Virus record (IMG/VR): IMGVR_UViG_3300042922_000542
Location: 1-64,000 of that record
DNA: 64,000 bases
Strand: one strand, 5' to 3'
Positions 11,558 to 60,700 of the stretch are shown here, one piece after another. The notes under the pieces are model-generated. The model searched no databases. It saw nothing but the letters and a program-made list of their open reading frames with translations, and had not been told where the DNA came from. Position 1 is the stretch's first letter. Each line of letters starts with the position of its first letter. A program made the translations under genes and the position numbers.

Positions 11558-11589
11558 AATAATGGGGGACAATCAAGTCCCCCATTATT
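11558..11589. terminator. Bidirectional terminator
   Basis: AATAATGGGGGAC-AATCAA-GTCCCCCATTATT between convergent genes. Confidence 0.85.
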
Positions 11590-11607
11590 ATTTATTTTTT
11601 TATTTTA

Positions 11608-11901
11608 TTAGCAATTGCATCCACGACTAGTACAAGAGCAGCCATCATTATCTTCAACTAATATCATTCCGCAGTTATTGACAAACGAAATATACAAATC
11701 CGATTTTTTATCAGATGTAGACGAAACGTAGCCCTTACTTAATTCTTGTCTTAATACACTTAGACGAGTTGTTATATCAACCCATTCATTCGTGAATGAT
11801 TCATGCACGCCAACAAATTGTTCAACCGCATTAGCACGCCCAATCAATTCTAGTGGCAATACATTTGTATCAATTAATTCATATTGAACTTTCTTAACCA
11901 T
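11608..11901 (-). CDS. Small accessory protein (TIGR04116-like) with Cys-rich tail
   Basis: 97 aa; 'EW..ITTRLSVLRQELSKGY...LYISFVNNCGMIL' and tail GCSCTSRGCNC; last gene of the cassette. Confidence 0.55.
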   Translation of the reverse strand: MVKKVQYELIDTNVLPLELIGRANAVEQFVGVHESFTNEWVDITTRLSVLRQELSKGYVSSTSDKKSDLYISFVNNCGMILVEDNDGCSCTSRGCNC

Positions 11902-11915
11902 TATATTTCTCCTGA

Positions 11916-13181
11916 TTAATAATTTATTTTTCTGAATGATCTCTGTTGATCTTCTCGATTCATAGGTTGAGGATATCCAATTGTAGTCGGTTCTGTATGA
12001 TATGATTTCTCTGAAATATCTGCAGATGTATTAGATTGTAAATACGTTGTACAATGTCCTACGCATGTACTAATGCATTTATCAGTACAATTATTAAAAC
12101 AATCTCTATTACAACTTGAGTCACACCACCAACCACATAAATTGGCACAATTAGAACAAGTACCCTGACATTTAACTGAGCATAAACCAATACACATACC
12201 CACACATGAGTAGCAAAGATCACTACAACCACCACATGAGTCAGTGCAATTATCATAACAATGATTCACACATTTATTTACGCATGTTTGAGTACAATAA
12301 ATATTACATGCTTGGCCACATTGAACCGAACATTGACTTGAACAAGGTCCACAATTAAATCCACAATTGTTAGCGCATGTTCTACATAATGATGAACATG
12401 CATTTGAACATAGTGCTGTACATGATTTACCAACACAATTAACACTACATGTATTTACACATGCACCCTTACTTGCACCGCATGATGAACGACAAGCTTC
12501 TAGATGACAACTCGTGTTACAATCCTTTTGACATAGACCGGTACACGAACCACCGCAATTTCCACATCCCGTTGATCCAGGCGGTTTAGCATCCTCTTGG
12601 GATGATGCATGACCATCACATGTTGTACATATACCAGTGTTTGCATTACAATCACTTGCACAATTTGTACAACCGCCACCACCAGAACTAGTAGTTGCAC
12701 ATTCTTCTCTACACGATGTTCCACATCCTGTGCATGCACCACTACAACCACTACAACCATCTCCAGTACTAGTGCCGCTACATCCTCCACCACAGGTACC
12801 ACCGCATCCACCTTCACATCCATTTCCACAACTAGAGCTACACATAGAACAGTCACCTGAACAACTTCCAGGGCAACTAGTATCTCCAGGATCTGGTGCA
12901 GCAGATGACGATCCTTTACAAGTACCAGTACAACCACTACACCCTCCACTGCATCCATTAGAACATGATCCGGACCCAGCATTACAAGTATCTCTACACA
13001 TACCTTTACATGTTGTACCACAACTATCAGAACTACAACCTGCACCGCATCTAGATTGACAAGATGTTCCACAACTACCACATCCAGTACCAATACTCTT
13101 TGTTGCTGTGGTACTACTAGAACTACTAGCAGCATCTTTTGCTTGTTTTATAGCACCTATTATTCCTGACAATAAACTCAT
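11916..13181 (-). CDS. CxxxC-repeat Cys-rich protein, putative radical SAM substrate
   Basis: 421 aa, about 78 Cys (hand count), mostly spaced CxxxC/CxxC; RBS AAGGTGAT. Confidence 0.85.
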   Translation of the reverse strand: MSLLSGIIGAIKQAKDAASSSSSTTATKSIGTGCGSCGTSCQSRCGAGCSSDSCGTTCKGMCRDTCNAGSGSCSNGCSGGCSGCTGTCKGSSSAAPDPGDTSCPGSCSGDCSMCSSSCGNGCEGGCGGTCGGGCSGTSTGDGCSGCSGACTGCGTSCREECATTSSGGGGCTNCASDCNANTGICTTCDGHASSQEDAKPPGSTGCGNCGGSCTGLCQKDCNTSCHLEACRSSCGASKGACVNTCSVNCVGKSCTALCSNACSSLCRTCANNCGFNCGPCSSQCSVQCGQACNIYCTQTCVNKCVNHCYDNCTDSCGGCSDLCYSCVGMCIGLCSVKCQGTCSNCANLCGWWCDSSCNRDCFNNCTDKCISTCVGHCTTYLQSNTSADISEKSYHTEPTTIGYPQPMNREDQQRSFRKINY

Positions 13182-13214
13182 TTATCAATCACCTTCTTTA
13201 CACAATGATCTGTA

Positions 13215-14852
13215 TCAAACACGTATACCCGTATTTGCATTACAATCTATTTTACATGTAGCTGTACAAGCACTAGTACAACCAAAACACGTTCCAGTAC
13301 ATGTTAAATTACATGATCCAGTACAACCATCACAAGCTGTACACCCATTTGAACATCCAGTGTCACAGTTACCACAATTATTACTGCAGGTTACAGTACA
13401 ATTATCGTAGCAACTATTTTTACAAGTACTGAAACATGACAATGTACATACACCCTCACATACACCAGCACAATCACCTGTACAATCTGCAACACAACCC
13501 TCTTTACACGATTGACCCTTTCCAGATTTATAACCACCATTATGTTCATTATCATTACTAATGCATCCACCAAAACAACTAGTTGAACAATATGTATTAC
13601 AAGTTGTAAAACATAATGCTGAGCATACTGAATCCCAACATGTCGTTTTTTTATTAGGATAATATTGACATGAGAATGAACATCCACTGCATGTATACGT
13701 TGATGATATTACTGTATTTTGGATAACTGCACTTGAGGCTGTCTGTCCACAATTATTACTACATCCGCTAGGGTTACCTGTAGATTTAATAGAAACTGTA
13801 TCAGCTCCTGCATTCAAACAAGATTTACCACCAATATCACTACATTTGGTTTTACATCCAGAATAACATTGTGTCGTACATCCTGTACATATATTACCAC
13901 AATCTGAATGACATGCATTACCGCATCTGCTCCAACATGTGGATGCACAACCTTCGGAACATTGATTATCACATGTTAGATAACATAAACCTGTACATGC
14001 TACATTACACAATCCTTTAGATCCTGTTGAAATTTGTCTTGATGGATATTCTGATCCTCTATTAGGGTTTCTAGGATTAGCTCCAAATCTAGATGCTGAA
14101 CTAATGCCACCTGTCACTTGATCAACTACTGTTTCATTTCGTTGATCGTCCTGAGTAATTATATGACGATGAACAATCGGTGAAACATATGGGTTTATCG
14201 GATGATGATCAATAACACCAGGACTTGCTCCATAATCATCATAGAAGTTAGTCTCATCAGGACCACTATGACCTGGTAATATTTCTTCACCATCATATTC
14301 TCCAGATGGATATTCTACTGGAACTGTTACGGTTTTACCATTATTTGCAATAGGGTATAAACCATATCCTGTATACATACCATTCGTAACTCCATTATTA
14401 GGGTCATATTTCTGAAAAGATTCAGTAACGGGCACATTTAAAATATCATTTTCAGCAGCTTCTATTTTTGTTGATATATCTTCAGGATCTCTAAACACTA
14501 AACCCGCAACCTCATCTCTGCCATAGAATAAATCTATGTCATGGATCTTAGATAAACCAACTAAATAGTTTTGTATTTCATCAACATCAATTCTAGCACT
14601 AGATGAATTAATATCTCCAACAGGATTATCTCCTTGCGCAGGATATTTGATATTTCTTGTAGGTTCTATGGATCCGGTAGATGGAGTATTAATGGTATAT
14701 GTTTTATCTGTGACTTCACTAGTCCTATCAGCTCCGACTGCAGGTGTAGTTAACGGATCCCACCATTTAAATGTTCCACGACGTTTAATCTCAGCATTTA
14801 ATTTATCCTTAATTGCATCAAATTCTGTTTTTGAATATAATTTATCATTCAC
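13215..14852 (-). CDS. Protein with Cys-free N-half and CxxxC-repeat C-half, putative radical SAM substrate
   Basis: About 545 aa from GTG 14852 (RBS GAGGTG); about 52 Cys, all in the C-half starting at GLCNVACTGLC. Confidence 0.85.
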   Translation of the reverse strand: MNDKLYSKTEFDAIKDKLNAEIKRRGTFKWWDPLTTPAVGADRTSEVTDKTYTINTPSTGSIEPTRNIKYPAQGDNPVGDINSSSARIDVDEIQNYLVGLSKIHDIDLFYGRDEVAGLVFRDPEDISTKIEAAENDILNVPVTESFQKYDPNNGVTNGMYTGYGLYPIANNGKTVTVPVEYPSGEYDGEEILPGHSGPDETNFYDDYGASPGVIDHHPINPYVSPIVHRHIITQDDQRNETVVDQVTGGISSASRFGANPRNPNRGSEYPSRQISTGSKGLCNVACTGLCYLTCDNQCSEGCASTCWSRCGNACHSDCGNICTGCTTQCYSGCKTKCSDIGGKSCLNAGADTVSIKSTGNPSGCSNNCGQTASSAVIQNTVISSTYTCSGCSFSCQYYPNKKTTCWDSVCSALCFTTCNTYCSTSCFGGCISNDNEHNGGYKSGKGQSCKEGCVADCTGDCAGVCEGVCTLSCFSTCKNSCYDNCTVTCSNNCGNCDTGCSNGCTACDGCTGSCNLTCTGTCFGCTSACTATCKIDCNANTGIRV

Positions 14853-14915
14853 ACTTATCACCTCAATCACATTTATATTTGCATTTATTTAATTTTAAAG
14901 AGTCTGCAAATTCAA

Positions 14916-16727
14916 TTATTGGTTTTCCAATACGGTAATTGTAGAACGAGCCACTATCATTTTTAATAATTTTAACTCTTCCTCATTAATAACCATCAAT
15001 GCCCATTCGTCGGGTAATTGTAATTTTCTTACTCCCAAATTATAATGTGGTTTCTTTATAGCTAACAGGTTCCAGTAATATACATTGGCTAAGTGTTCGG
15101 CAAACATTTGTAAACATATGAATTGAGTTCTCTTATTTGCAGTCCCATATGTTTGATGGCATAACCCACTACACCAAGAGCAAGAAGATCCAATTGGACA
15201 ATCATAACAAATATCATTTGATTGTGAACGCCTTGTTACACTATCCATCATCGACAATATTTCGGATCCTTCTTCTCTACCAACCATACCAGTATCAATA
15301 TGACCTATACATTGCTCTTTGCATTTCGTTCCAAGTGATGATGGCATATATCTAATACATGGATAAAATTTACCCTTGTAGTCTAGTGCCAACATTGATC
15401 CTAATCCTCCACACCAATTTTGATCCGAAGTGTGTTTAAGCCTAGTCTCAGGTTTATCATCGAATATAGCAATATATAGATGCTCTAAATTATTTTCCAG
15501 CAAGTAGTTCGCTAGTTTCTTTAATTGTTCATATTCTAGTGTAGCAGTTTCTTGTGTCCAAACATCTTCAAACACGCAGTTTAAATTGATAGATTCCATA
15601 TCCTCATTGATGAAATTAATAACTGAATCATATAAATATTTCATATTTTCTGGAGCCAATGTCATCTTTGAATTTCTTTCGGTAGTATGATATTTATTAA
15701 AATGATTTAATGCAAGAATATCGATATCATACGAGCCTTCACCATTAGGCTGGATTCTACATGAGTCTTGTAATTCTTTATTACCATCTATTGATATATT
15801 AAATGAAACATGTTTAGCATATTTTTTAAAGAAATCTTGCACGTCTCTATCAAAATATAACATCCCATTGGTACATATAGAAATTCTATGCATTGCAAAC
15901 CATGGATGGTTTAATTCATAGCATCTTTCTAAAAAATATTCATAAATCTTTTTGGTAAGATTAATTTCTAACAATGGGTCCCCACCAATAAACTCAATGA
16001 TTATTGCAGGTGAATTGTGTTTATTAATATAACTATATTCATCATTTAAAAGTTTATCGATAAATGCTTTAGCTGTTGGAAATTTCATTCTTCCACATGT
16101 TTTATTTATCTGATAACAATATGTGCAGGATAAATTACAATCCTCAGTTGTTTGGAATGTAAAGTTGTGTACATATATTGATGTATCCTTATTAGTAGGA
16201 TCTACTGTATCTTGAGTAAACAATTCAGGGTAAACTTTTTGAATGGCATCACTATAACTTTCAACATTAAATCTAAAAAATTGATTTGGCATTATATTAA
16301 ATACTTCATCATCCTTTATTTTATCATCAATATAATTTAAACAATTTTCATCATCAGATAATATTATTACATCAAATCCAATCTCTTGATTTTTGAAATC
16401 AATATGTTTAACAATTACCTCAGATATATTATCAATATTATATGAGGAAACTCCAGATGATTCGATTATATCATTTAAGAATACTGCAACTATTTCACAG
16501 AATCCATAACGTACCTCGTCCAAGATACTAGTAAGTTTTTCATGTAATTCCGGGATTTTATCTAGATCCTTATTATGGTCATACATATAATTTATTCTAA
16601 ATGATATCGCATCAGCTTCATATCGTAACCTGGTTGTTTTATGATACCCGAATGTCTGCATTTCAAATATATCGAATTGCTGATTGTATAATTTAATTTT
16701 TTTATATAATGCATTTGTCTCTTTCAT
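14916..16727 (-). CDS. Radical SAM/SPASM peptide maturase, CXXX-repeat target family (TIGR04115-like), with N-terminal extension
   Basis: CxxxCxxC (TEDCNLSCTYCYQ), IEFIGGDPLL, SIDG; SPASM (NWCGG..FYPCIRY..CYDCPIGSSCSWCSG..FIC); C-terminal LANVYYWN signature. Confidence 0.9.
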   Translation of the reverse strand: MKETNALYKKIKLYNQQFDIFEMQTFGYHKTTRLRYEADAISFRINYMYDHNKDLDKIPELHEKLTSILDEVRYGFCEIVAVFLNDIIESSGVSSYNIDNISEVIVKHIDFKNQEIGFDVIILSDDENCLNYIDDKIKDDEVFNIMPNQFFRFNVESYSDAIQKVYPELFTQDTVDPTNKDTSIYVHNFTFQTTEDCNLSCTYCYQINKTCGRMKFPTAKAFIDKLLNDEYSYINKHNSPAIIIEFIGGDPLLEINLTKKIYEYFLERCYELNHPWFAMHRISICTNGMLYFDRDVQDFFKKYAKHVSFNISIDGNKELQDSCRIQPNGEGSYDIDILALNHFNKYHTTERNSKMTLAPENMKYLYDSVINFINEDMESINLNCVFEDVWTQETATLEYEQLKKLANYLLENNLEHLYIAIFDDKPETRLKHTSDQNWCGGLGSMLALDYKGKFYPCIRYMPSSLGTKCKEQCIGHIDTGMVGREEGSEILSMMDSVTRRSQSNDICYDCPIGSSCSWCSGLCHQTYGTANKRTQFICLQMFAEHLANVYYWNLLAIKKPHYNLGVRKLQLPDEWALMVINEEELKLLKMIVARSTITVLENQ

Positions 16728-16794: not shown

Positions 16795-16824
16795 GATAAT
16801 GGATGGGCAATCCCATCCATTATC
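16795..16824. terminator. Terminator hairpin between the two rSAM cassettes
   Basis: GATAATGGATGGG-CAAT-CCCATCCATTATC. Confidence 0.8.
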
Positions 16825-16825
16825 A

Positions 16826-17662
16826 CTATCTATTATTTGATATGTATTCTTGATATATCATGGATAGTTCTTGATCAACTTTATTCCGCTCAGTTAATTT
16901 TGTATCATCATATTTTTGCTCGGATAACAATTGACCATTACAGTCCTTCGTTGAAATTACATAATGTGAATTGACATTAACGGTATTAATATTCTCAATA
17001 GTGATTTCATTATCGATAAAATAATTATCATAGATTAATTGTTTCATAATACTCATATAATGATCTCTAATAATATTGAAATCATCACTGACAAATCCAA
17101 ATTCAATTCGTTTAAATCCAATAGAAACTAAATTATTGATACTTTCTTTAAGATATCCAATATTAGATTTATTTAAAGTACAATGTGCAATTAGGTTAAT
17201 CCCACTCTTTATGAATTTGCCTATATTGTCTATTATATAATCATATGATCCTTTCCCGTTTTTAAGTATACGATTAATATTGTGCGATAATTTATTACCA
17301 TCTATTGAAATACATAATAAAATATTATATTTTTTAATGGTATTAATAATTTCATCTGAATACATCATACCGTTAGTTGAAGTTACAAATTTAAATTTAT
17401 ATTCAGAATAATGATCAATAATATATTTACATATTTGATTTAGTCGATCTATAAATAAAAATGGTTCACCGCCTAATAATTCAACAGTAATCGACCTACC
17501 CGTAATATGCAACATACTTTCATCGAATATCCGAATTATATCATCTATGGTACTATCTGATTCAATATCACTATCAAGCATATTATTATATACATAACAA
17601 TATTTACATCTCATATTGCAGAGCTTAGTAATATACATATTTATATGTCGACATTCAGACAT
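16826..17662 (-). CDS. Radical SAM protein lacking a SPASM domain
   Basis: TKLCNMRCKYCYV, LLGGEPFL, TNG, ISIDG; no C-terminal Cys cluster; ATG overlaps upstream TAA. Confidence 0.85.
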   Translation of the reverse strand: MSECRHINMYITKLCNMRCKYCYVYNNMLDSDIESDSTIDDIIRIFDESMLHITGRSITVELLGGEPFLFIDRLNQICKYIIDHYSEYKFKFVTSTNGMMYSDEIINTIKKYNILLCISIDGNKLSHNINRILKNGKGSYDYIIDNIGKFIKSGINLIAHCTLNKSNIGYLKESINNLVSIGFKRIEFGFVSDDFNIIRDHYMSIMKQLIYDNYFIDNEITIENINTVNVNSHYVISTKDCNGQLLSEQKYDDTKLTERNKVDQELSMIYQEYISNNR

Positions 17663-18783
17663 TAATCATCATCCTTCAAATTAAATTTAATACGAATATT
17701 GTCATATCCAATTTTATTAATAAACATTTCAGATGCATCATAAAAAAGTTTTATTGCTTTACATACACCATCTATGGGTTCACATATATTTTTCTTACCA
17801 TGTTCCATTATTGCTGCAAAACATTGACCATAGCATACGCCATATAATTCACAATTTCTACATTTTGGAGATATATCATGTGAAAAGTTTTTATATATAT
17901 TTGCAATATTATTGGTTTCATCAATATCAGTAAATATGGAACCAAGTTTAGTATGTTCAAAGCGGTTATTGAAAAAACGTTGACAAGGATATATGTCACC
18001 ATTGGGTGCTAATGCAATTGTAGATGAACCAGCTGAACAGAAGTAGGTTCTACCGTGGGCTTTACATCTATATGGTAATAGTAAGCCAGTATCAAGAAAT
18101 GGAGTTTCCGAGTAAAATTTATCAACTAGAAATTCTACATATTCAATATAAAAATTCTTTAATCTCTCCAATTGCACATCATTCCAATCGCAATCTCGGA
18201 CAATACTCAAATTAATACGCCTGAATCCATCTTTGATGTAATCTTTAATACCATCTAGGACATAATCAATATTATCAGGTGATATCATAAATTTAAATAT
18301 TTTAGAGCTGATTGGTCTGTTATTAGCTTCACAATATAGTGTAGCACCTTTTATACAGTCATCATAGCTACCTTTACCATTTGGATATACCCGACATCTA
18401 TCATGGCTGCTTCTCCCACCATCTAGGGACATACTAATCCCTATTTCATTATTCTTGAGATATTCAACCTTCTCTTTATTTAATAATGTCAAATTACTTG
18501 TAGTCATAATTGCAATATTTACATCTGGTCGCATTTTTTTTACTTCATTGATATTATCAACTATTTTACAGAATTTTTCCCATTCCATTATAGCCTCTCC
18601 ACCGAATAAATCAATATGAAGAGATTTTATATCATTTTTAACGATAATATTATTAAGAAATACGGGCAAATATTCAATAACATCATCCGATATTGTTAAC
18701 CCGTTTGTTTTATTAACATAGCAATATTTACAACGCAAATTGCATTTCTCAGTTACAATAATAATGATTGTACTAATTTTCAT
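17662..18783 (-). CDS. Radical SAM/SPASM maturase
   Basis: TEKCNLRCKYCYV, FGGE, SLDG; SPASM CSAG..GDIYPCQRF..CRNCELYGVCYGQC..VC. Confidence 0.92.
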   Translation of the reverse strand: MKISTIIIIVTEKCNLRCKYCYVNKTNGLTISDDVIEYLPVFLNNIIVKNDIKSLHIDLFGGEAIMEWEKFCKIVDNINEVKKMRPDVNIAIMTTSNLTLLNKEKVEYLKNNEIGISMSLDGGRSSHDRCRVYPNGKGSYDDCIKGATLYCEANNRPISSKIFKFMISPDNIDYVLDGIKDYIKDGFRRINLSIVRDCDWNDVQLERLKNFYIEYVEFLVDKFYSETPFLDTGLLLPYRCKAHGRTYFCSAGSSTIALAPNGDIYPCQRFFNNRFEHTKLGSIFTDIDETNNIANIYKNFSHDISPKCRNCELYGVCYGQCFAAIMEHGKKNICEPIDGVCKAIKLFYDASEMFINKIGYDNIRIKFNLKDDD

Positions 18784-18794
18784 TTTTTATACCT

Positions 18795-19208
18795 CTAATT
18801 ATCACCTATTACCAAACCACATTGATCACAATCACATGCACATCTATCACAATTGCAAGAACATCTATCGCAATCACAATCACAATTATCGCAATTACAT
18901 TGACATGTATTATTGTATATTGTCGTAGCAGCTATACTGGCATTATTAAAAACTGTAGCAAGTATATATTTGCCTTGTTCAAAATTTATCAATGAACTAA
19001 GATCTGCCTTGGGATATACCGCTGAATGACCATTTGCAGCAACTAAATTATTTTTAATTGATGTAAACAAAGTGCTAGTTATTAAATTACCTTTCACGGC
19101 TCTTTCTGTATTTGCAGGTTGACCAAGTCGTATTCGAGTTTGATCAACCGATGCAGCAACAACATTTGCATCATCCGCTAACATTTTCTGACCTTTAACT
19201 ATTGCCAA
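18795..19208 (-). CDS. Small protein with C-terminal (CxCxCDx)4 repeat, putative rSAM substrate
   Basis: Likely TTG start 19208 after GGGTGA; tail CQCNCDN-CDCDCDR-CSCNCDR-CACDCDQ-C. Confidence 0.85.
   Translation of the reverse strand: MAIVKGQKMLADDANVVAASVDQTRIRLGQPANTERAVKGNLITSTLFTSIKNNLVAANGHSAVYPKADLSSLINFEQGKYILATVFNNASIAATTIYNNTCQCNCDNCDCDCDRCSCNCDRCACDCDQCGLVIGDN
18829..18905 (-). repeat. Imperfect 21-bp tandem repeat encoding CxCxCDx heptads
   Basis: Four 7-codon units visible in both DNA and protein. Confidence 0.75.
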
Positions 19209-19518
19209 TGTTATCACCCACTTTTACAATAAAATCAATAGACTCATATAAAATATCACTGATTGAGAAGTGATATATATTCTTTACAATATTACTTATA
19301 GATTTAACGATGGTACCATTTACCAATACCTGAACTGATTTTACTGGTTTATCCCTAAAATATTGATTTAAAACTGTACCTGTTGTTGGAACAACATCAT
19401 TTATGATACGTAATTGAGTTAATTCACTCCCAACATTCATAAAAAAATTTATCCCCGCAGTTTTATCAATTATAACATCTTCATCAATATATTCAATTTT
19501 TATTTTTACACCTTCCAT
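19195..19518 (-). CDS. Small beta-rich hypothetical protein in rSAM cassette
   Basis: 107 aa, RBS AGGAGG; resembles the neighbouring ORF. Confidence 0.7.
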   Translation of the reverse strand: MEGVKIKIEYIDEDVIIDKTAGINFFMNVGSELTQLRIINDVVPTTGTVLNQYFRDKPVKSVQVLVNGTIVKSISNIVKNIYHFSISDILYESIDFIVKVGDNIGNS

Positions 19519-19549
19519 AATTTAACCCTCCTGTTTATAATAATTAATC

Positions 19550-19951
19550 TTATTCATAATTAAAATGGAGTTCGGAATTAGATAAATATATTCGATCTAT
19601 TATTATATCATCCATAATATTTATACCATATGAGATACTCTTTACGCCTAATATTTCATCACATATTTCATCTCCATTAAACATTTGAACATTGATTACT
19701 TTTCGATCCATCAATGCTTGACGAATTATATCAAATTTTTCATGAAAGTCGTTAACTGTGACATTTCTAATGATTAATGCATTTGATATCATTTTGCTTA
19801 AACTATTTGCCACTGTGAGACTATCATCTCGGTATCGTACGGCCGATACTACCGGGGATTGAGGTAGGGATGTTGGATCTATATTAATATTAGGCACCAC
19901 ATCTAATGTCATCGTCACCATTGGTTCGATTATTATTTTTACACGTGTCAT
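19550..19951 (-). CDS. Small beta-rich hypothetical protein in rSAM cassette
   Basis: Likely start MTRVK at 19951 (RBS AAGGGG); overlaps the 3' end of the upstream rSAM gene. Confidence 0.65.
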   Translation of the reverse strand: MTRVKIIIEPMVTMTLDVVPNINIDPTSLPQSPVVSAVRYRDDSLTVANSLSKMISNALIIRNVTVNDFHEKFDIIRQALMDRKVINVQMFNGDEICDEILGVKSISYGINIMDDIIIDRIYLSNSELHFNYE

Positions 19952-21224
19952 TGCATGAACACCCCTTTTCATTTATCATACGAGAAACTTTTTCTGTTAT
20001 TAATAATTCATGTAATTCTAATAAATGTTGTAGCGTTATTATTTGACCTTCCGTAAAATTATCAGTTAGAAGTCTACCCATTTCTTGCAAAACTGTAATT
20101 GAGACTTCGTGATCTCTATGAATTTTACCAAATAGTCGTTCATATACATAAATCGATAATTCCATTTCAACCTCTAATAATTTACAATACTTAGGAAAAC
20201 CATATGCGATATTTCCATTTTCTATATAATTAATAGCCATACAGCTCTTGCAGTTATAATTCTTACATTCAGAACATGCCTTGTATCCAGTCATATATTT
20301 TTTATACATCTCTTCATATGGTGCACATTTTAATGTATTTATACCATTAAATACATCACCAATTATAGTATCTGGGTCATTCATGAATGCATGGCATGGA
20401 TATATATAACCATCTGGAGCTACAGTGCAAAATGATACACCCGCACCGCATGTTTTATCGGCATGTCGCTCTTTATATACCATTGATGAAAATTGTTTAT
20501 AATTCCCTCCACTATTTTCACAATCCTCAATGATTGCATTGGCAATATGGGTATATTGCTCTCTAAATATAACATAATCATTTTCATCCCAATTCTCTTC
20601 ATGAAGAGGCATAAACCATATCTTATCAAATCTTAAGATATTTTTAAAGAAGATGTATGACTCATGTGCATATGGTAATGTTGCTTTGGTTATAACACTA
20701 TGCACTGATAATTTATTAGATGGAATGTCTAATTTATCAAATAATGCTCTAAGTTTTTTTATCGTCTCTATTATATTATGAGATGAACCATTACCCGCAT
20801 GATCAATTCTTTGCAGATCATTAATCCTAGGAATTGAATCAAATGATAATTGAATTGAAAAACTTTCAGGATTATTTACCCACCAATTGGTTAGAAATTG
20901 TTCGTATTCATTATTGTATAATACACCATTTGTTATCAATTCACTATTATATTTCAAACCATGTTTTTTACATTGATCCATAGCATAATTGAATATGTGG
21001 TTCATAGTATTTATATTGAGTGTAGGCTCCCCTCCAAAATATGACACACTAATACTTGTTTTATTATTAACTAAAGCATCATGGATAAGTAAATCAATTG
21101 TTTTTTCACCAATCTCATTACTCATAAATTTACCCTTTGATGAATTATTTTTTTCAAAACAATATTTACAATTAAGATTACATGTGTCTGTTAATAGTAT
21201 CGATGCACTCGTAAATGATGACAT
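19890..21224 (-). CDS. Radical SAM/SPASM maturase
   Basis: TDTCNLNCKYCFE, YFGGEP, ITNG; SPASM CGAG..GYIYPCHAF..CSECKNYNCKSC..YC. Confidence 0.92.
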   Translation of the reverse strand: MSSFTSASILLTDTCNLNCKYCFEKNNSSKGKFMSNEIGEKTIDLLIHDALVNNKTSISVSYFGGEPTLNINTMNHIFNYAMDQCKKHGLKYNSELITNGVLYNNEYEQFLTNWWVNNPESFSIQLSFDSIPRINDLQRIDHAGNGSSHNIIETIKKLRALFDKLDIPSNKLSVHSVITKATLPYAHESYIFFKNILRFDKIWFMPLHEENWDENDYVIFREQYTHIANAIIEDCENSGGNYKQFSSMVYKERHADKTCGAGVSFCTVAPDGYIYPCHAFMNDPDTIIGDVFNGINTLKCAPYEEMYKKYMTGYKACSECKNYNCKSCMAINYIENGNIAYGFPKYCKLLEVEMELSIYVYERLFGKIHRDHEVSITVLQEMGRLLTDNFTEGQIITLQHLLELHELLITEKVSRMINEKGCSCNDTCKNNNRTNGDDDIRCGA

Positions 21225-21285
21225 TTATTACGCCTCCTGATAATTATAGAAATTAATATTGTATGTTGTTTAAGATTCCTATATT

Positions 21286-21320
21286 TAAATAGTTAATCCG
21301 ATTGTCGGATTAACTATTTA
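21286..21320. terminator. Hairpin at end of tail-fibre gene
   Basis: TAAATAGTTAATCCGA-TTG-TCGGATTAACTATTTA. Confidence 0.7.
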
Positions 21321-23634
21321 AAATTAATATTTTTACTCTTTGAATATCTTCCGTATCTTTATTCTCTAATGCCTTACCTATTATAGATCCTGGAATACTT
21401 GATACTGAACTTTTTCCAACGCCTTTGATAGACGATGTTGTTATTAAATCTCCAGCTTTAACCTTGCCGGTAATATATGCAGATACTCTTCCTGTTAATC
21501 CTATAGGTATATTTCTTTCTAAGTTTTCCTCAGTGGTATATCCTTCTTCCAAACCTAATAAATATCCATATGTATCAGATACTACACCAACAACCAATGT
21601 CGAATATTCACCAGTGCTTTTTCGATAATTACCAGTTTCTGGATTTAATTCTATAATATCGCCAGGTTTAAAATCTTCAGACATATCATCCTTTTTAAAT
21701 AACTCGGCAACGTCACCCCATACTGCATTCTGAACTAAAGAGCCTGTTATGGTACCGGTAACTGTTAAATTACCAGTGATCGTTCCGCCAGTGAGTGGTA
21801 AATATGGATGGGTGTGTCCATTATCAGATTTATTATTCCATGCTGCTATTTGAGCATCTGTTACAAATCTATTAGTAGTATTTTGAGTTATAATCGATGC
21901 TGGGTGGCTCGCAGGATGTTGATATGAATATGGAGCGAGTTTAGATGCCAAAGCTTGTAGTTGTTCCACCGTGGATCTACTACTAATAGAATCGATTATA
22001 GTTGCAAATGATACATCAGTTGGTGCTGCAGCAGCACTAGTCATATTTCCTTTAATAGAAAATGCAGGTATATCTGCTAATTTTATATTCGTTACAGCTT
22101 TATCTCGTATTTTTGTAGTTAATATAGATAAATCTGCAATATTATAATCAGTTACAGCATTCATTTGAATTTTATGATTATTTACACAACCCTCACCCAA
22201 TTCATCGGAAGTTATAGTAAATGCAGCAATCTTTATACCAGTAACAGCCCTATCTGCAATAGCTGGCGTTTTAACGGACCCTTGCAATATATGATAATCG
22301 CGTATTGCATTACCAGCTATCTTTGAAGCAATGATCGTCCCATCTAATAAGTGATTATACATTACATTATTATCAGCTATATGTTCGGCAAGAATTGCAC
22401 CTGCTTTAATATCAACACTGTCCGCAACGGCTTTGTATGCTAAGTTTTGTAATCCTGTAACGTGTATTTCATCAACTACCGTACTGACATCACCATTTAT
22501 CATGTATGATATAGAACCATTATTTGAACCAGATCCTATCTCTATAGATTGTATAAATCTGCCATCAGCTTCAGCTTTACTGTATACATCTGTAGCCTGT
22601 GGTAGTGCTGCCACATTTATTGATAGACCGTTAGGTGTTTCAGAAAAATAAGTTGCATCATATTTTGATATTGTGAAATCCTGTATATCCCACCAATAAT
22701 TATCACCATCATGTTTACATGCAGCAATTGCACTATAATTAGAATTTTCTTTATTTTTAATCAGATATATATGTCTTTGTAATAATGGCGATGCCATCGG
22801 TAAATCTGAAACTTTATTTACAATATCAATAAATTCAACGTAGTCAGTTAAATCAGGTCCAACTATGGTATCAACATATGATGTCACGAAGTCAACTACT
22901 GCTTTAGATGATGGATATTTAACATCATCATAGTTTGTAGTATGTGATATAGTCACTGATTTGTTAGCAATATTTTCTTTAGCTGCAAATAATGGTCCAT
23001 GTGAAAATGGATTTGTCAAATGTGTTGTATAATCATTTAATAAATTAACCATTCTGGCATCTAGTAAATCAATACTATCGTTTAATTCAGTTTGTACATT
23101 AGATAATGCATTACGTATATCACTATGTGCTGTATTGCTAGTATCATGAATACCAATAATATTATTAATTGTATTTGAAACACTACCATCCGAATCTAAT
23201 TGATCTATTGTAACGTTGTGAGGATTATTAAAATTTGCAAGATGTGCGGTTAATGATGATAGGTCTATATTAAAATTATAATTTTCTAATATCGACATTA
23301 CTGCATTTCTCTGATTATATGATAATGGCTTCTCCAAATCAGATGTATTGTTAACCCGACCGAGTCCTATATCTTCAGATGTAATATTAATATCGCCGTA
23401 CATCCCATTTACAGATGTTACTGGGAATGTAATATATCCAATACCACCTTCTTTTATTTCTTCACGTATATCATCTAGTATTTGACGTAATGTTATTTCG
23501 TTCGCATCCTGTTGGTCATATATAGCATCTAATACACTTCTAGGCCAAATTATATCGGCCATACTAGTACTCGGATTATTCTCATCATCAAATACAATTT
23601 GATCGCGGATAACTTTATTCCTAATATTATTCAT
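21310..23634 (-). CDS. Tail fibre protein with C-terminal intramolecular-chaperone (peptidase G2-like) domain
   Basis: PVTSVNG..G, GLGRVNNTSDLEKP, NPHNVT, 10-aa IxxxAVTxxK repeats, HPASHPAS, HTHPYLPLTGGTITG; C-terminal DVAELF..PGD..VVGVVSD..GRV..GDL..IIGKALE; start ATG 23634 with AGGAGG. Confidence 0.85.
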   Translation of the reverse strand: MNNIRNKVIRDQIVFDDENNPSTSMADIIWPRSVLDAIYDQQDANEITLRQILDDIREEIKEGGIGYITFPVTSVNGMYGDINITSEDIGLGRVNNTSDLEKPLSYNQRNAVMSILENYNFNIDLSSLTAHLANFNNPHNVTIDQLDSDGSVSNTINNIIGIHDTSNTAHSDIRNALSNVQTELNDSIDLLDARMVNLLNDYTTHLTNPFSHGPLFAAKENIANKSVTISHTTNYDDVKYPSSKAVVDFVTSYVDTIVGPDLTDYVEFIDIVNKVSDLPMASPLLQRHIYLIKNKENSNYSAIAACKHDGDNYWWDIQDFTISKYDATYFSETPNGLSINVAALPQATDVYSKAEADGRFIQSIEIGSGSNNGSISYMINGDVSTVVDEIHVTGLQNLAYKAVADSVDIKAGAILAEHIADNNVMYNHLLDGTIIASKIAGNAIRDYHILQGSVKTPAIADRAVTGIKIAAFTITSDELGEGCVNNHKIQMNAVTDYNIADLSILTTKIRDKAVTNIKLADIPAFSIKGNMTSAAAAPTDVSFATIIDSISSRSTVEQLQALASKLAPYSYQHPASHPASIITQNTTNRFVTDAQIAAWNNKSDNGHTHPYLPLTGGTITGNLTVTGTITGSLVQNAVWGDVAELFKKDDMSEDFKPGDIIELNPETGNYRKSTGEYSTLVVGVVSDTYGYLLGLEEGYTTEENLERNIPIGLTGRVSAYITGKVKAGDLITTSSIKGVGKSSVSSIPGSIIGKALENKDTEDIQRVKILILNS

Positions 23635-23807
23635 TGTTATCATCCTCCTATATGTCATAAAATATAATTATTACTCTAATTTATATTAAACAAATGGTTT
23701 GAGTGCTGATGAAGAAAAGCAAAAAAATGAATTATTTAGATTATATATTATTCTATAAATATACCATAAAATCATATGGTATAATAAATAAAATGGAGGC
23801 ATCGCAG

Positions 23808-57781: not shown

Positions 57782-60700
57782 TTAATCTAAATTTATATTT
57801 ATTTCATTTTTTATAATGTTGATAGTATTTTTTGTACTATTGATACTTATAATGTTTGGATCGTATACTTTATATAGAGCTTCATTTAGATTGTGTGTTA
57901 GTATACCATATTCATCATACAATCTAACTGACATTCCATACCATTCATTCTTATCAATTATTACATGTGATTGTAGGTATGGATCGTTATTAATTTCTTC
58001 TTTCCATTCATCATTTAATAGATTAACTATAGTTATATAATCGATTGGCTTCCATTTAAATTGGCTCCATACCATTGATCGACCTGTTAAAGGAATTCCC
58101 TCTAACGTTGGAGCATTTAATACCATATACTGGAATGGTGTATTTACTATATCCGGTAACGGTAAATCTTCTGATGTATATAATCTTAATAGTATATCTC
58201 TATCGGTATCAACATTCTCAGGATAATCTTTATAATCAGGATGATCTCTACCAACTTGTCGCCAAACAGGTGTTAATAATTTTTCTTGTTCATCAATTGC
58301 ATAGTTATCATCAGGCAATGTACCTTTTAACGCATCATCCAAATATGTTGAATAATTCCATACCGGATATGGTCTTAAACTATCTTCAGAATCTATTACT
58401 TCTAGAAACTCGTCACTGAAATACTCATCTTGTGATCTATTAATTTCAAGAATTTCTAAATTTTTTAATGAAGTTAATCCATGCAAAAATATTTTTGTTG
58501 GTGAAATAATCGTAACTTCATCATCTAATAATTTACCGTTTACCCAGAATTCAAAATATGTTTTGTTTAAAGGTTTATTTATTTTACCTTCAAGATTGAT
58601 ATAACCATGTTTGGGAATGTTTCTCTGTACATAAACTGATCTAACTGGGTAAGGTAGGGTTCTAATCTCAACTTGTTCATTGCGTCTATATAGATTTAAG
58701 AATGTAACATCAGTTCCAGTTTCAGTTAAATTGGTATCTAATGTAGGTTTCTCTGTTGAGCAATTAACTATTGGCATTCTAATATTATTTAGTAACATAT
58801 AAAATCTATCTTGCGGTGCTTGATAGTTTGGTATTTTATATGTTGGGGTCATTTCCCAGTCATTACCCATAAATCTCCATCTATGAGGAGTCTTATCTAT
58901 TGTAATAGTATAATTTGTCGGTTCTGGAATATTATATTTCGGAATTATCTTGAATTCACCTTTAGGTGGAACTGCCATTGCATCCGTTATATTTTTTATC
59001 CAACCATCATCGATTGATTCAATTTCAAATGTTCTAAACTCAACATACATTTTTGCAGCAGTATGGGTTCCTATATATTCACTCTGGTATATTATAAATT
59101 CATAATTTCCAGCATCAGGAATTTCAGGAATATGTCTAGGTGTAAATGATAGCACATGGCTTGACATATCGGATTTGATATCGCCAAATATCTGGATATT
59201 ATGATCCTTATTGTATGCCCATGCTGAACCGGTTGTATATCCATCCCCAGGATATGTTACAATATGTGATGTAATTTTGGTATAGGTTTCGGTTCCTTCA
59301 TATATAACATCAATTGGATCTGCAACTATTCTTATTTCATCTGATCCAACAATAGGAATTGCAGTACTGTCCTGATTTATTACTTGGACATCATCTATAT
59401 TGATTGTATTACCTACATCATCAATGACTGCTGTATTTTCATCTAGTATTACCTCAGTATTTTTTTCTTTGTATGATATATTTCTAAACCATACATCGAA
59501 TCTGCTGCTATCCATTACATTTTCGAAGCTATTTGTATTATTATTAAATAATATTATATCTTCTAAATGTATCTCATTACGATAATGCATATAATCAGCT
59601 AATTTGAATAGCATTCCATCTTCTTTAGTGTGTTCAGATATTGTATAGTTTTTAGTCTGTGTATATGGAAATAGTTTTCTAATACGAATTGATCTTCCGG
59701 TATTAATATTCACTCTAGCAGGTAATATGTTTATTTCATCAATGATAGATGTAAATATATCCAATTTTGCGTTACGTAATAATGAATTATTACGCTTTTG
59801 AGTATCAGCTGTTTTGTTTAGATATAATTTCATGTCATATTTGAAATATTCATCATCTTTTAGAAATGTTAATGTAAAACCTAAATCATTATCGTCATCA
59901 TCGAATATTGATTCCAATTCCCATCTACTTTGATCATTTAAATCCTCCCATTCTTTAGTAGTCCAGTTAAATACAGAGATATCATTAGGACCTATATTGT
60001 GAATGTAGGTAGAATTATTTTCATAATGTGGAACATATGTCGGTTTCCATTTTCTAGTATTTATGTTTCTTTTAATCATATCATATGATCTGACTGTCAT
60101 CCACGGTGCATCTGGATACTGTTGGCGGATGTTTGGATATCCGGGTTTATAATCAGAATCCATCCAAAATACATCAAACCATCTCCATGTCTCATCTGAG
60201 ATTATACCATCATCATATATTAATTCACCTAATCCATTTATACCTGTTATTTTATATATGCAACGATGTAAATCCCTAGTTTCGTCCACATTAATCCCGA
60301 CAGTTTTACCTATAATAACATTAGGTAGTTGTGATTTATTAACAGGCCTTTCTGCAAATGTTTCGAAATTATAATCGGTGACTACTGAATTTTCAGAGTT
60401 ACACATTAACACTTGGCTTATAAATTGATATTCCCCTTTAACTGGTTGATTTGGTGGAATTCTTTTAGTATCATCTATAAATGGGTGCGTAACTTCTTCA
60501 ACGTTTTGAATGCCATTCCACTTATCATTGATATCGCCTGTTATTGAATTATCAATACGATTTCCTTGGTAAAAGTGATGTTCTGGATCCCCATCGTCAC
60601 ATGCAGGGTCAGGTAATGGATCAAGCATTGGAATTGAAGGGTACATAAATGTATCATTACGATCATCCATTGGAAGATTATCATGACGATGTTCAATAAA

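Follow-up and report, generated by a model that had tools for sequence, protein, structure and literature searches.

The window, that is, the whole stretch of 64,000 nucleotides that was analysed, belongs to a 246-kb contig of a soil jumbo phage. On its minus strand, between two hairpins, lies an operon of six genes (16795-21322) in which three radical-SAM (rSAM) enzymes are placed around a small protein of the tail-fibre type that carries four CxCxCDx repeats near its C-terminus. In this analysis all the open reading frames given in the preliminary description were found, and its observation of a hairpin-bounded unit with three rSAMs and a cysteine-heptad protein is confirmed.

Organization of the cassette

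Immediately upstream of the operon there is a gene encoding a 782-aa tail-fibre protein (21310-23658, minus strand), which gave PHROG tail-fibre hits and a sub-threshold hit to a Peptidase_G2 chaperone domain. The hairpin at 21284-21322 (18-bp stem) lies directly after this gene and acts as its terminator. Between this hairpin and the first gene of the cassette a promoter-like site was found (21243-21272; TAAACA, 18 nt, TATAAT; 10 of 12 matches), although this is a consensus match only and such sites are not enriched over shuffles in this AT-rich region, so that the evidence is weak. The downstream boundary is a hairpin at 16795-16824, which resembles an intrinsic terminator with a 13-bp stem followed by a T-rich tail.

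The first gene (19890-21224) encodes an rSAM enzyme of 444 aa (r444) and its 3' end is overlapped by a gene (19550-19972) encoding a small protein of 140 aa (sA), for which an alternative start at 19951 gives 133 aa. No Pfam, NCBIfam or PHROG hit was obtained for sA. An ORF of about 120 aa occupies the same position in locus L002 and in contig P0002. The next gene (19195-19518) encodes a protein of 107 aa (sB) that has only three family members among 1.84 billion representatives. Its AF2 model is all-beta with nine strands (pLDDT 70), showed no significant fold match in the PDB and, unlike an RRE, contains no helices.

The cysteine-heptad protein is encoded at 18795-19208 if the TTG start at 19208 is taken (137 aa), or at 18795-19217 from a GTG start (140 aa). 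We consider the former, which was the version given in the preliminary description, to be the best start, since the ortholog in a related phage begins exactly there, its residue 1 aligning to residue 4 of the GTG ORF; the public gene call of 129 aa is probably too short. The N-terminal domain is confidently predicted to be a three-helix unit and carries the GxxIxAxxxN motifs of its family. It is followed by the heptad array (18819-18905), which reads CQCNCDN-CDCDCDR-CSCNCDR-CACDCDQ-C, with 13 Cys in total and Asp at position 6 in four of four heptads. The protein does not end on this array, as had been stated, because seven more residues (GLVIGDN) follow. At the DNA level three consecutive CxCxC[DN]x heptads occur twice (overlapping) in the window and 0 times in 100 shuffles, and TRF found a 21-bp period with 3.9 copies.

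The operon continues with an rSAM-SPASM enzyme of 373 aa (r373; 17662-18783) and ends with an rSAM of 278 aa (r278; 16826-17662), whose start codon overlaps the r373 stop. The neighbouring cassette A of the same window pairs an rSAM-SPASM (344.4 bits against a cut-off of 350 for the CXXX-repeat peptide maturase family, TIGR04115) with CxxxC-repeat proteins, and its different periodicity, which had been pointed out in the preliminary description, is real.

The three radical-SAM enzymes

All three enzymes pass the Pfam Radical_SAM cut-off (PF04055; 38.6 bits for r444 and 60.2 bits for r278) and have the CX3CX2C motif at residues 14-15 (residue 15 in r444). Enzyme r373 has a canonical 7-Cys SPASM motif spanning residues 249-341 (PF13186, 25.7 bits against a cut-off of 21.5). 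The C-terminal domain of r444 is a variant, SPASM-like one that stays below this cut-off (16.8 bits), has the spacing CX2CX4CX2C with nine Cys in the region, and is followed by a tail of about 85 aa. Enzyme r278 has one Cys after residue 200 and therefore no auxiliary-cluster domain.

PapB (NF047865) is the best-scoring curated family for the three enzymes, but none of them reaches its cut-off of 340 bits (183.3 for r444, 183.3 for r373 and 119 for r278, the model matching the last only at positions 5-231 of 330). They are thus PapB-like and not members of the PapB type. The best curated hits, namely PapB, SCIFF/CteB, QhpD, CXXX-repeat and CcpM, are thioether-forming Cys-directed maturases, although no enzyme of the cassette reaches any curated family cut-off. 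The closest solved structure for the three enzymes is CteB (PDB 5WGG; E 1e-27, 4e-25 and 1e-12), a Cys-directed non-alpha thioether synthase, and the alignments start at CteB residue 102 for r444 and 98 for r373, so that the N-terminal RRE of CteB has no counterpart here; no RRE was found in any of the enzymes. Scores with the SCIFF maturase model (TIGR03974) are 72-142 bits against a cut-off of 425, the highest being that of r444.

Distribution of the heptad proteins and their linkage to radical-SAM enzymes

The 137-aa protein belongs to a large and essentially viral family, whose members have a helical N-terminal domain followed by (C-[T/P]-C-[N/D]-C-[N/D]-[Y/F])n heptads and often by a Peptidase_S74 trimerisation chaperone. 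A DNA scan for three consecutive heptads found 60 viral loci. Of 41 distinct IMG/VR loci with an in-frame heptad protein, 29 have at least one PapB/CteB-like rSAM within 8 kb and 16 have three or more. This is a conservative phmmer count, and most of the loci counted as lacking an rSAM have the heptad gene at a locus edge. The gene set is kept while its order varies: denoting the rSAM clades A, B and C, the heptad gene HEP, and other gene families of the module f4, f7 and f13, arrangements include A-B-f4-C-f7-HEP, HEP-A-B-f13-f4-C and B-x-C-A-HEP, whereas the window has A'-sA-sB-HEP-B'-r278. The family of the 782-aa tail-fibre protein flanks the module in 20 loci, including the window.

The three rSAM clades, each with SH-aLRT 99, usually contribute one member per locus. 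Enzyme r373 joins clade B (SH-aLRT 93) and r444 is nearest to clade A, but r278 sits on a long branch near clade B and does not group with clade C, the canonical SPASM-less clade. Moreover, sA and sB show no similarity to the small proteins f4, f7 and f2 of the canonical module. Some heptad proteins have only one rSAM nearby, as in CP220 and in a Clostridium rectalis contig where a 187-bit relative of r444 sits beside a heptad protein, and a scheme of one enzyme per cysteine is therefore not general.

In a related 232-kb phage (locus L097) all six genes are intact at 34-68% amino-acid identity, including a 277-aa ortholog of r278 (58% identical) and an ortholog of sA (34% identical). About 40% of the identical residues use different codons, which points to purifying selection. 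The cassette sits in the tail-fibre block in both phages, and in L097 cassette B persists without cassette A. The same local synteny appears in two further contigs.

Over 353 heptads, the only positions conserved besides Cys are 4 (98% N/D/Q) and 6 (N/D, partly by ascertainment), while positions 2 and 7 vary between subfamilies. The invariance of Asp at position 6 proposed in the preliminary description is local to this window: the ortholog has Asn in one heptad, and Asp and Asn interchange at positions 4 and 6, also within single arrays elsewhere. Of 51 family members, 24 continue into an SDxRLK motif, and five of five tested pass the Pfam Peptidase_S74 cut-off. The homolog in Campylobacter phage IBB_35 (gene 3-9) was found by mass spectrometry in purified virions (PMC3322345).

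Proposed role and related systems

The preliminary description interpreted the cassette as a second, orthogonal enzyme-substrate code, possibly producing Cys-Asp/Asn thioethers, and this interpretation is only partly supported. The unit is a discrete cassette, and a functional link between the three rSAMs and the heptad protein is supported by the conservation of the six-gene set in a related phage and by the recurrence of rSAM/heptad co-localisation in dozens of rearranged phage loci. However, the regular CX3D spacing of PapB substrates is absent, and the target is not a free-standing peptide precursor but a member of a tail-fibre-associated family with a confidently folded N-terminal domain.

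We propose, with a probability of roughly 0.55, that cassette B is a late-type operon and a rare variant of a widespread and apparently undescribed phage module that probably cross-links virion fibres enzymatically; no paper linking these repeats to rSAMs was found. In this view the 137-aa protein would be, by the architecture of its family, a virion fibre or fibre-accessory component, although it lacks the S74 chaperone and is only 137 aa long, so that its place in the virion is by analogy. The enzymes, which resemble RiPP maturases (PapB/CteB/QhpD-like), would act on the unassembled or assembling protein in the reducing host cytoplasm, most likely converting the heptad cysteines into thioether bridges to carbons of the flanking Asn/Asp residues at positions 4 and 6, within a chain or between chains. 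This would turn the repeat into a covalently stapled, redox- and protease-resistant rod or knot, with the uncleaved N-terminal domain playing the role of a leader, and sA and sB may be cassette-specific helpers, possibly a chaperone or adaptor. The N-terminal domain is modelled at pLDDT about 90 and the tail is unmodelled (below 50), which fits a region that needs partners or modification to fold. While the gene content, operon boundaries, family membership, conserved linkage and absence of an RRE are shown by our analysis, the heptads as substrate, the thioether chemistry, the acceptor residues, the division of labour among the enzymes and the incorporation of this particular protein into the virion are inferred, there being no biochemical datum for any member, no demonstrated recognition partner and no score that would allow the chemistry to be transferred with confidence.

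It is possible, though less likely, that the enzyme-substrate pairing is the same but the chemistry differs, for example S-C-alpha (sactionine) links, oxidation of Cys to formylglycine or a dehydro-residue as by anSME, epimerisation or another type of cross-link, with the SPASM-less enzyme performing a distinct step as in the paired HxsB/HxsC systems. All hits are indeed below family cut-offs, models of anSME (72-92 bits), sactisynthase (RumMC), cyclophane-forming enzymes and HxsB/HxsC also match, and r278 has no auxiliary cluster, unlike known thioether synthases. Nevertheless, the top hits for the three enzymes and for the canonical clades are consistently the non-alpha thioether group (PapB, SCIFF, QhpD), and the conserved N/D beside every Cys matches the acceptors of that group (PMC8326336).

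More doubtful is that the tail is a metal-binding or Fe-S-like (metallothionein-like) stalk, comparable in principle to metal-coordinating repeats on the axis of other trimeric phage fibres, and that the rSAMs act on glycans, cofactors or other proteins. The tail is 35% Cys with alternating Asp, a pattern that would put all Cys on one face of a beta-strand, a Cys-rich trimer axis could simply bind metal, AF2 cannot fold the tail alone, and canonical loci also carry glycosyltransferase-like and sugar-dehydrogenase genes and further rSAMs that are not PapB-like. This alternative is not excluded by any computation here, but PapB/CteB-like maturases stay linked to heptad genes through several rearrangements, including minimal rSAM-plus-heptad pairs and the compact operon of the window, which has no other plausible substrate; in addition no metallothionein family hit was obtained, and Asn, a poor metal ligand, is preferred over Asp family-wide. 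Least likely appears a classical diffusible RiPP carried as a phage moron, in which the first 95 or so residues would be a leader and the C-terminus would be cleaved off and exported as a ranthipeptide-like bacteriocin or signal. The small size, the C-terminal Cys-rich core, the RiPP-type maturases and the absence of S74 in this subfamily would agree with it, whereas no protease, transporter or immunity gene was found in the operon, the putative leader is a well-folded domain homologous to that of bona fide S74-bearing fibre proteins, the cassette lies in the tail-fibre block and the family is essentially viral.

Among described systems, PapB is an rSAM-SPASM enzyme that acts iteratively on a repeat-containing Cys/Asp-rich substrate, producing six Cys-Asp thioethers in freyrasin (PMC8326336), a ranthipeptide; there a single enzyme serves a short secreted peptide, while here three enzymes, one without SPASM, accompany a folded protein of a phage fibre family with CxCxCDx spacing. 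The established chemistry of the families that gave the best curated hits (PapB, SCIFF/CteB, QhpD, CXXX-repeat and CcpM) is the formation of thioethers from Cys to Asp, Asn, Thr or Glu. QhpD installs several Cys-Asp/Glu thioethers inside a structural protein subunit, QhpC (the quinohemoprotein amine dehydrogenase gamma subunit), rather than in a RiPP (PMC8326336), and is the best functional analogy for stapling a protein, although its model (TIGR03906) matches r373 and r444 at only 101-115 bits against a cut-off of 453, and QhpC has no heptad repeat, is not viral and is served by a single enzyme. Cassette A follows the same logic of a dedicated maturase plus a periodic Cys target in the same fibre block, but its period is four instead of seven with three Cys, its enzyme family differs and it has one enzyme. 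In the bacterial and itself uncharacterised His-Xaa-Ser system, SPASM (HxsB) and SPASM-less (HxsC) rSAMs serve a short-period repeat substrate, which is HxS and not Cys-based; r278 matches HxsB at 96 bits and canonical clade C matches HxsC at 43 bits, both below the cut-offs. Finally, in trimeric phage fibres and spikes with a C-terminal Peptidase_S74 intramolecular chaperone (endosialidase type) no Cys-heptad stalk or dedicated rSAMs are known, but the canonical heptad proteins carry this domain directly after the repeats, and the heptads therefore occupy the position of the trimeric stalk.

Organization of the operon and relationships of its enzymes

The DNA examined is part of the 246-kb viral contig IMGVR_UViG_3300042922_000542, which has about 30% G+C and carries a multisubunit-RNAP beta gene, helicases and large virion proteins, so it is a jumbo phage. 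A search of public sequencing runs found the cassette in a single soil metagenome, probably its source, with no RNA evidence. No near-identical DNA was found among GenBank phages. Six tightly packed or overlapping genes lie on the minus strand between a hairpin with an 18-bp stem (21284-21322) and a terminator-like hairpin with a 13-bp stem (16795-16824). These are r444 (19890-21224), encoding a radical-SAM (rSAM) enzyme of 444 aa, the small genes sA (19550-19972) and sB (19195-19518), the gene for the Cys-heptad protein (18795-19208), and r373 (17662-18783) and r278 (16826-17662), encoding rSAM enzymes of 373 and 278 aa. A gene for a 782-aa tail-fibre protein is placed immediately upstream, and a second rSAM unit, cassette A, is found downstream. 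The three enzymes and that of cassette A are the only rSAM genes in the window.

The preliminary description had reported a hairpin-bounded unit with a 137-aa protein ending in four Cys-rich heptads and flanked by two SPASM enzymes and one SPASM-less rSAM, and this observation is confirmed with small corrections. The Cys tail reads CQCNCDN-CDCDCDR-CSCNCDR-CACDCDQ-C, but it is followed by GLVIGDN. At the DNA level the heptad pattern is absent from 100 shuffles and has a 21-bp period. The proposed 137-aa start (TTG at 19208) is supported by an ortholog, whose Met1 aligns to that codon.

All three enzymes are bona fide radical-SAM proteins, with Pfam PF04055 scores of 60.2, 41.2 and 38.6 bits against a gathering cut-off of 29.5 and the CX3CX2C motif at residues 14-15 in each. 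r373 has a canonical 7-Cys SPASM motif at residues 249-341 (PF13186, 25.7 bits against a cut-off of 21.5), while r444 has a variant with CX2CX4CX2C spacing and 9 Cys that remains below the cut-off (16.8 bits), and r278, with only one Cys after residue 200, has none.

For all three enzymes the best curated family is the PapB family of ranthipeptide maturases (NF047865), but the scores of 183.3 (r373), 183.3 (r444) and 119.2 bits (r278) do not reach the cut-off of 340. This family is followed by the CXXX-repeat, SCIFF, QhpD, nif11 and CcpM maturases, every score being far below its cut-off. Scores were 142, 110 and 72 bits for the SCIFF maturase model (TIGR03974, cut-off 425) and 109-127 bits for the CXXX-repeat target maturase (TIGR04115, cut-off 350). 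The repeated Cys-X3-Asp/Glu motifs of PapB substrates are also missing, since Cys and Asp alternate in parity in the tail and only one C-x3-D occurs, across the junction of heptads 1 and 2. The closest solved structure is CteB (5WGG), but the alignments begin at CteB residue 98-102 and at residues 4-10 of the phage enzymes, so that the N-terminal RRE of CteB (described in PMC8326336) has no counterpart. We therefore regard these enzymes as PapB/CteB-like Cys-directed maturases that are not members of any named family.

A word search with sB found only itself and an exhaustive HMMER search found 3 members, whereas r278 found only itself in IMG/VR. The possibility that sA and sB are discrete RRE/PqqD-like proteins was considered, but neither gave a Pfam hit even at E up to 5. 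The sB model is all-beta with no PDB match, and the reading is rejected for sB only, so that sA may still be such a protein. The ESM Atlas gave only low-confidence leads (pLDDT 0.38 for the sA model). We also asked whether sA and sB correspond to the small proteins f4, f7 and f2 of the canonical phage module described below, and this was rejected at sequence level, the hhalign probabilities being at most 1.4%. No protease or transporter family was found in any of the six genes, and there is no fused RRE either, so the operon does not qualify as a classical RiPP cluster.

A phage Cys-heptad family linked to radical-SAM genes

The protein database contained only two distant relatives of the Cys protein. 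Both have (CxCxC[DN]x)n arrays and the same local synteny, namely an rSAM-SPASM, a protein of about 120 aa, one of about 110 aa, the heptad protein and an rSAM. A degenerate DNA scan for three consecutive heptads then found 60 IMG/VR loci, whose translation shows one family. It has an N-terminal domain with repeated GxxIxAxxxN and ExxRRG motifs, followed by 3 to about 30 heptads with consensus C-[T/P]-C-[N/D]-C-[N/D]-[Y/F] and, in 24 of 51 distinct proteins, by an SDxRLK continuation. This continuation is a Peptidase_S74 (PF13884) intramolecular chaperone, which passed the Pfam cut-off in 5 of 5 proteins tested (25.7-29.7 bits against 22). In fibres of the endosialidase/S74 family this domain trimerises the upstream stalk. 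In many canonical heptad genes (locus L018, 6653-7548, and also loci L027, L032, L039, L041 and L042) the ORF stops about 12 residues into the S74 motif (...SDExLKxxIxY[IFLM], then a stop), and the rest of the chaperone domain is a separate ORF of 88-99 aa starting 2-3 nt later, whereas in other members it is fused. This is a split intramolecular chaperone.

The protein of the window lacks the S74 domain and has no Pfam hit. Nevertheless it belongs to this family, which we define by the N-terminal domain whose last GxxIxAxxxN motif abuts at least 3 C-x-C-[NDQ]-C-[ND]-x heptads, together with PapB/CteB-like rSAMs encoded within a few kb. It aligns with the family through both the pre-heptad motif and the heptads, an alignment of 20 members has 10 invariant Cys columns and the shared pre-heptad motif, and phmmer with the window protein recovers canonical members at E 1e-5 to 1e-9. 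Its residues 1-95 are modelled by AF2 at pLDDT about 90 as three helices, while the heptads are left unmodelled. No solved fold in the PDB matches this domain, and only weak matches to uncharacterised phage proteins were found in BFVD.

A tblastn search with a canonical heptad protein found nothing in GenBank phages, and only the CP220-type member has isolate relatives. It is carried by the Campylobacter Firehammervirus phages CP220, CPt10, CP21 and IBB_35. Its 21-bp repeat was noted in 2010 and so were the rSAM genes of these phages, 11 in CP220 and 12 in CPt10, said to be "highly unusual", but the two were not connected (PMC2853527). The CP220-type protein (534 aa) is annotated as hypothetical or, in CP21, as 'putative N-acetylneuraminate pyruvate lyase'. 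The homolog in IBB_35 (gene 3-9, 60.3 kDa) is in the list of virion proteins detected by MS, although at only 2.6% sequence coverage, which could reflect cross-linked, unsearchable peptides.

In phmmer searches with the window enzymes against all ORFs of the loci, PapB-like rSAMs were found beside heptad genes almost everywhere the flank is long enough. Of 41 distinct loci, 29 have at least one within 8 kb and 16 have at least three. Most of the 12 loci without a hit are truncated at the relevant side or have more diverged rSAMs. The idea of one enzyme per cysteine (3 Cys, 3 rSAMs) is not general, since some heptad loci show a single adjacent rSAM. A canonical module recurs, composed of a SPASM rSAM of clade A (about 368 aa), a SPASM rSAM of clade B (about 374 aa), a protein of roughly 100 aa (f4), a SPASM-less rSAM of clade C (about 290 aa), a protein of roughly 130 aa (f7), one or more heptad proteins and a protein of roughly 134 aa (f2). 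It occurs in at least three different gene orders and often next to tail-fibre family f6, which is the family of the 782-aa protein. Downstream of the heptad genes of canonical loci (L047, L050, L018, L025, L048 and others) there is a second conserved block with further non-PapB-like rSAMs (about 330, 300 and 252 aa), a GT2-like protein (f8) and two other proteins (f5 and f3), while a truncated NDP-sugar dehydrogenase (f9) lies upstream. This could be a larger fibre-modification island.

In the tree, clades A, B and C each have SH-aLRT 99. r373 with its ortholog joins clade B (support 93), r444 with its ortholog is nearest clade A but unresolved, and r278 is a long branch near clade B, so that its orthology to the canonical SPASM-less clade C is not supported. 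The window has therefore the same composition, with two SPASM-type enzymes, one SPASM-less enzyme, two small proteins and a heptad protein, but its small proteins and its third enzyme are of different origin.

The cassette itself is conserved in the 232-kb relative IMGVR_UViG_3300042934_000547, which keeps all six genes in the same order downstream of three fibre paralogs and has no cassette A at the corresponding position. Identities are 34-68%, and about 40% of identical residues are encoded by different codons. All six genes, including sA, sB and r278, therefore appear to be under purifying selection.

Metagenome and genome scans added marine C-P-C-N-C-[D/N]-F arrays with adjacent A and B enzymes. 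Most of the 32 pattern hits in bacterial genomes are out-of-frame or belong to unrelated CD-repeat proteins, and only 4 are true members. One contig of a cultured bacterium, Clostridium rectalis Marseille-P4200 (NZ_UYZZ01000009.1, our locus L086, the same as L040), has a minimal pair, with a 411-aa rSAM (187 bits to r444) next to a 142-aa heptad protein and beside a 1197-aa ORF. Together with the Firehammervirus phages it offers a possible experimental entry point. Runs of the CxCxCDx type also exist in unrelated proteins (L074, L077, L062/L166, L152/L175/L178), which include acidic (CDCDCDD)n proteins with a zinc-ribbon-like CPxC...CPxC end in Eubacteriales MAGs and 131-aa CxCDCDH proteins. 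None of these has an adjacent rSAM, and the motif alone therefore does not define the family.

Inferred modification of the heptads

Over 353 heptads, the only conserved positions other than Cys are position 4 (N 62%, D 31%, Q 5%), which was not constrained by the search pattern, and position 6 (N/D), which was. Positions 2 (T, P, S, A) and 7 (Y, F, R, H) differ between subfamilies that all keep the rSAMs. D and N interchange within single arrays and between the window and its ortholog, so the invariant Asp claimed in the preliminary description is a local feature and the family-level rule is Cys flanked by Asn/Asp. Its interpretation, a distinct enzyme-substrate code possibly producing Cys-Asp/Asn thioethers, is supported only in part.

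Relatives of these enzymes link Cys sulfur to C-beta of Asp (freyrasin), C-beta of Asn (NxxcA), C-gamma of Thr (CteA) and Asp/Glu within a protein subunit (QhpD). Thioether formation to the Asn/Asp at positions 4 and 6 is the most economical hypothesis, but it is an inference. In this view the enzymes would act in the reducing cytoplasm on the heptad region of a fibre-type protein, the retained, folded N-terminal domain would substitute for a leader and RRE interaction, and sA and sB would be subfamily-specific helpers. The product would be a covalently stapled Cys/Asx repeat that does not depend on disulfides, with staples that may be within or between chains. The gene content of the operon, the family membership of its heptad protein, the conserved linkage and the lack of a fused RRE are established by the sequence analysis, whereas the heptads as the substrate, the chemistry, the part played by each enzyme and the presence of this 137-aa protein in the virion are inferred.

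Other explanations are not excluded experimentally. A different rSAM chemistry on the same target is possible, although we consider it less likely. A metal-binding stalk accompanied by unrelated rSAMs seems unlikely, given that the linkage is conserved through rearrangements, and although no metallothionein Pfam hit was obtained, the composition (35% Cys) would allow metal binding. Least likely is a cleaved, diffusible RiPP, against which stand the absence of protease or exporter genes and the fibre-type N-terminal domain.

We are tempted to suggest, as a possibility that we put at roughly one in three, that RiPP-type radical-SAM maturases are used by many phages to install covalent thioether staples, possibly between chains, in a Cys-heptad stalk of virion fibres. 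If so, this would be a general enzyme-catalysed post-translational cross-linking pathway for virus structural proteins, extending RiPP-type radical chemistry from small secreted peptides to virion architecture through non-reducible cross-links, and it would give a testable function to the long-noted excess of orphan radical-SAM genes in phages such as CP220 and CPt10. The cassette of the window would be a rare, compact variant with Asp-rich heptads, its own two helper proteins and a third enzyme of independent origin. It would also define a new repeat substrate, with three Cys per heptad flanked by Asn/Asp and served by up to three diverged maturases that lack an RRE, which is of interest for enzyme specificity and for peptide or protein stapling tools. 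No Pfam, NCBIfam or PHROG family covers the heptad proteins or the small proteins, and full-text literature searches, including the literal motifs but not covering subscription-only papers, found no work connecting Cys heptads with phage rSAMs. The enzyme class is known, but the substrate class, the multi-enzyme arrangement without an RRE and the virion context appear to be new, and there is a real chance that they mark a general and unrecognised pathway of virion modification.

Cassette A and other features of the window

Cassette A (11558-16727) is a third hairpin-bounded unit on the minus strand. Its 603-aa rSAM-SPASM has a 185-aa N-terminal extension and scores 344.4 bits against the cut-off of 350 on TIGR04115, being the only enzyme that comes close to it. 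It is followed by a 551-aa and a 421-aa (18.5% Cys) CxxxC-repeat protein, a 97-aa ORF ending CSCTSRGCNC and a terminator at 11558-11589. Residues 11-34 of the 551-aa protein weakly match the F..I...lN.E..RRG motif of the heptad family (hhalign E 0.0026, probability 12%). The two adjacent cassettes, one with CxxxC and the other with CxCxCDx repeats, offer a natural orthogonality experiment.

Elsewhere in the window, a 2055-aa ORF (57782-63949) gave no PHROG hit at E up to 1e-5. Host inference through the ORF that PHROGs labelled terminase was uninformative, as it is a helicase-like protein with only distant hits. The 774-aa ORF at 41755-44079 hits PHROGs labelled terminase, DnaC-like loader, UvsX-like recombinase and primase, but by tblastn it resembles jumbo-phage DNA helicases over only about half its length, and may be a composite or intein-containing helicase.
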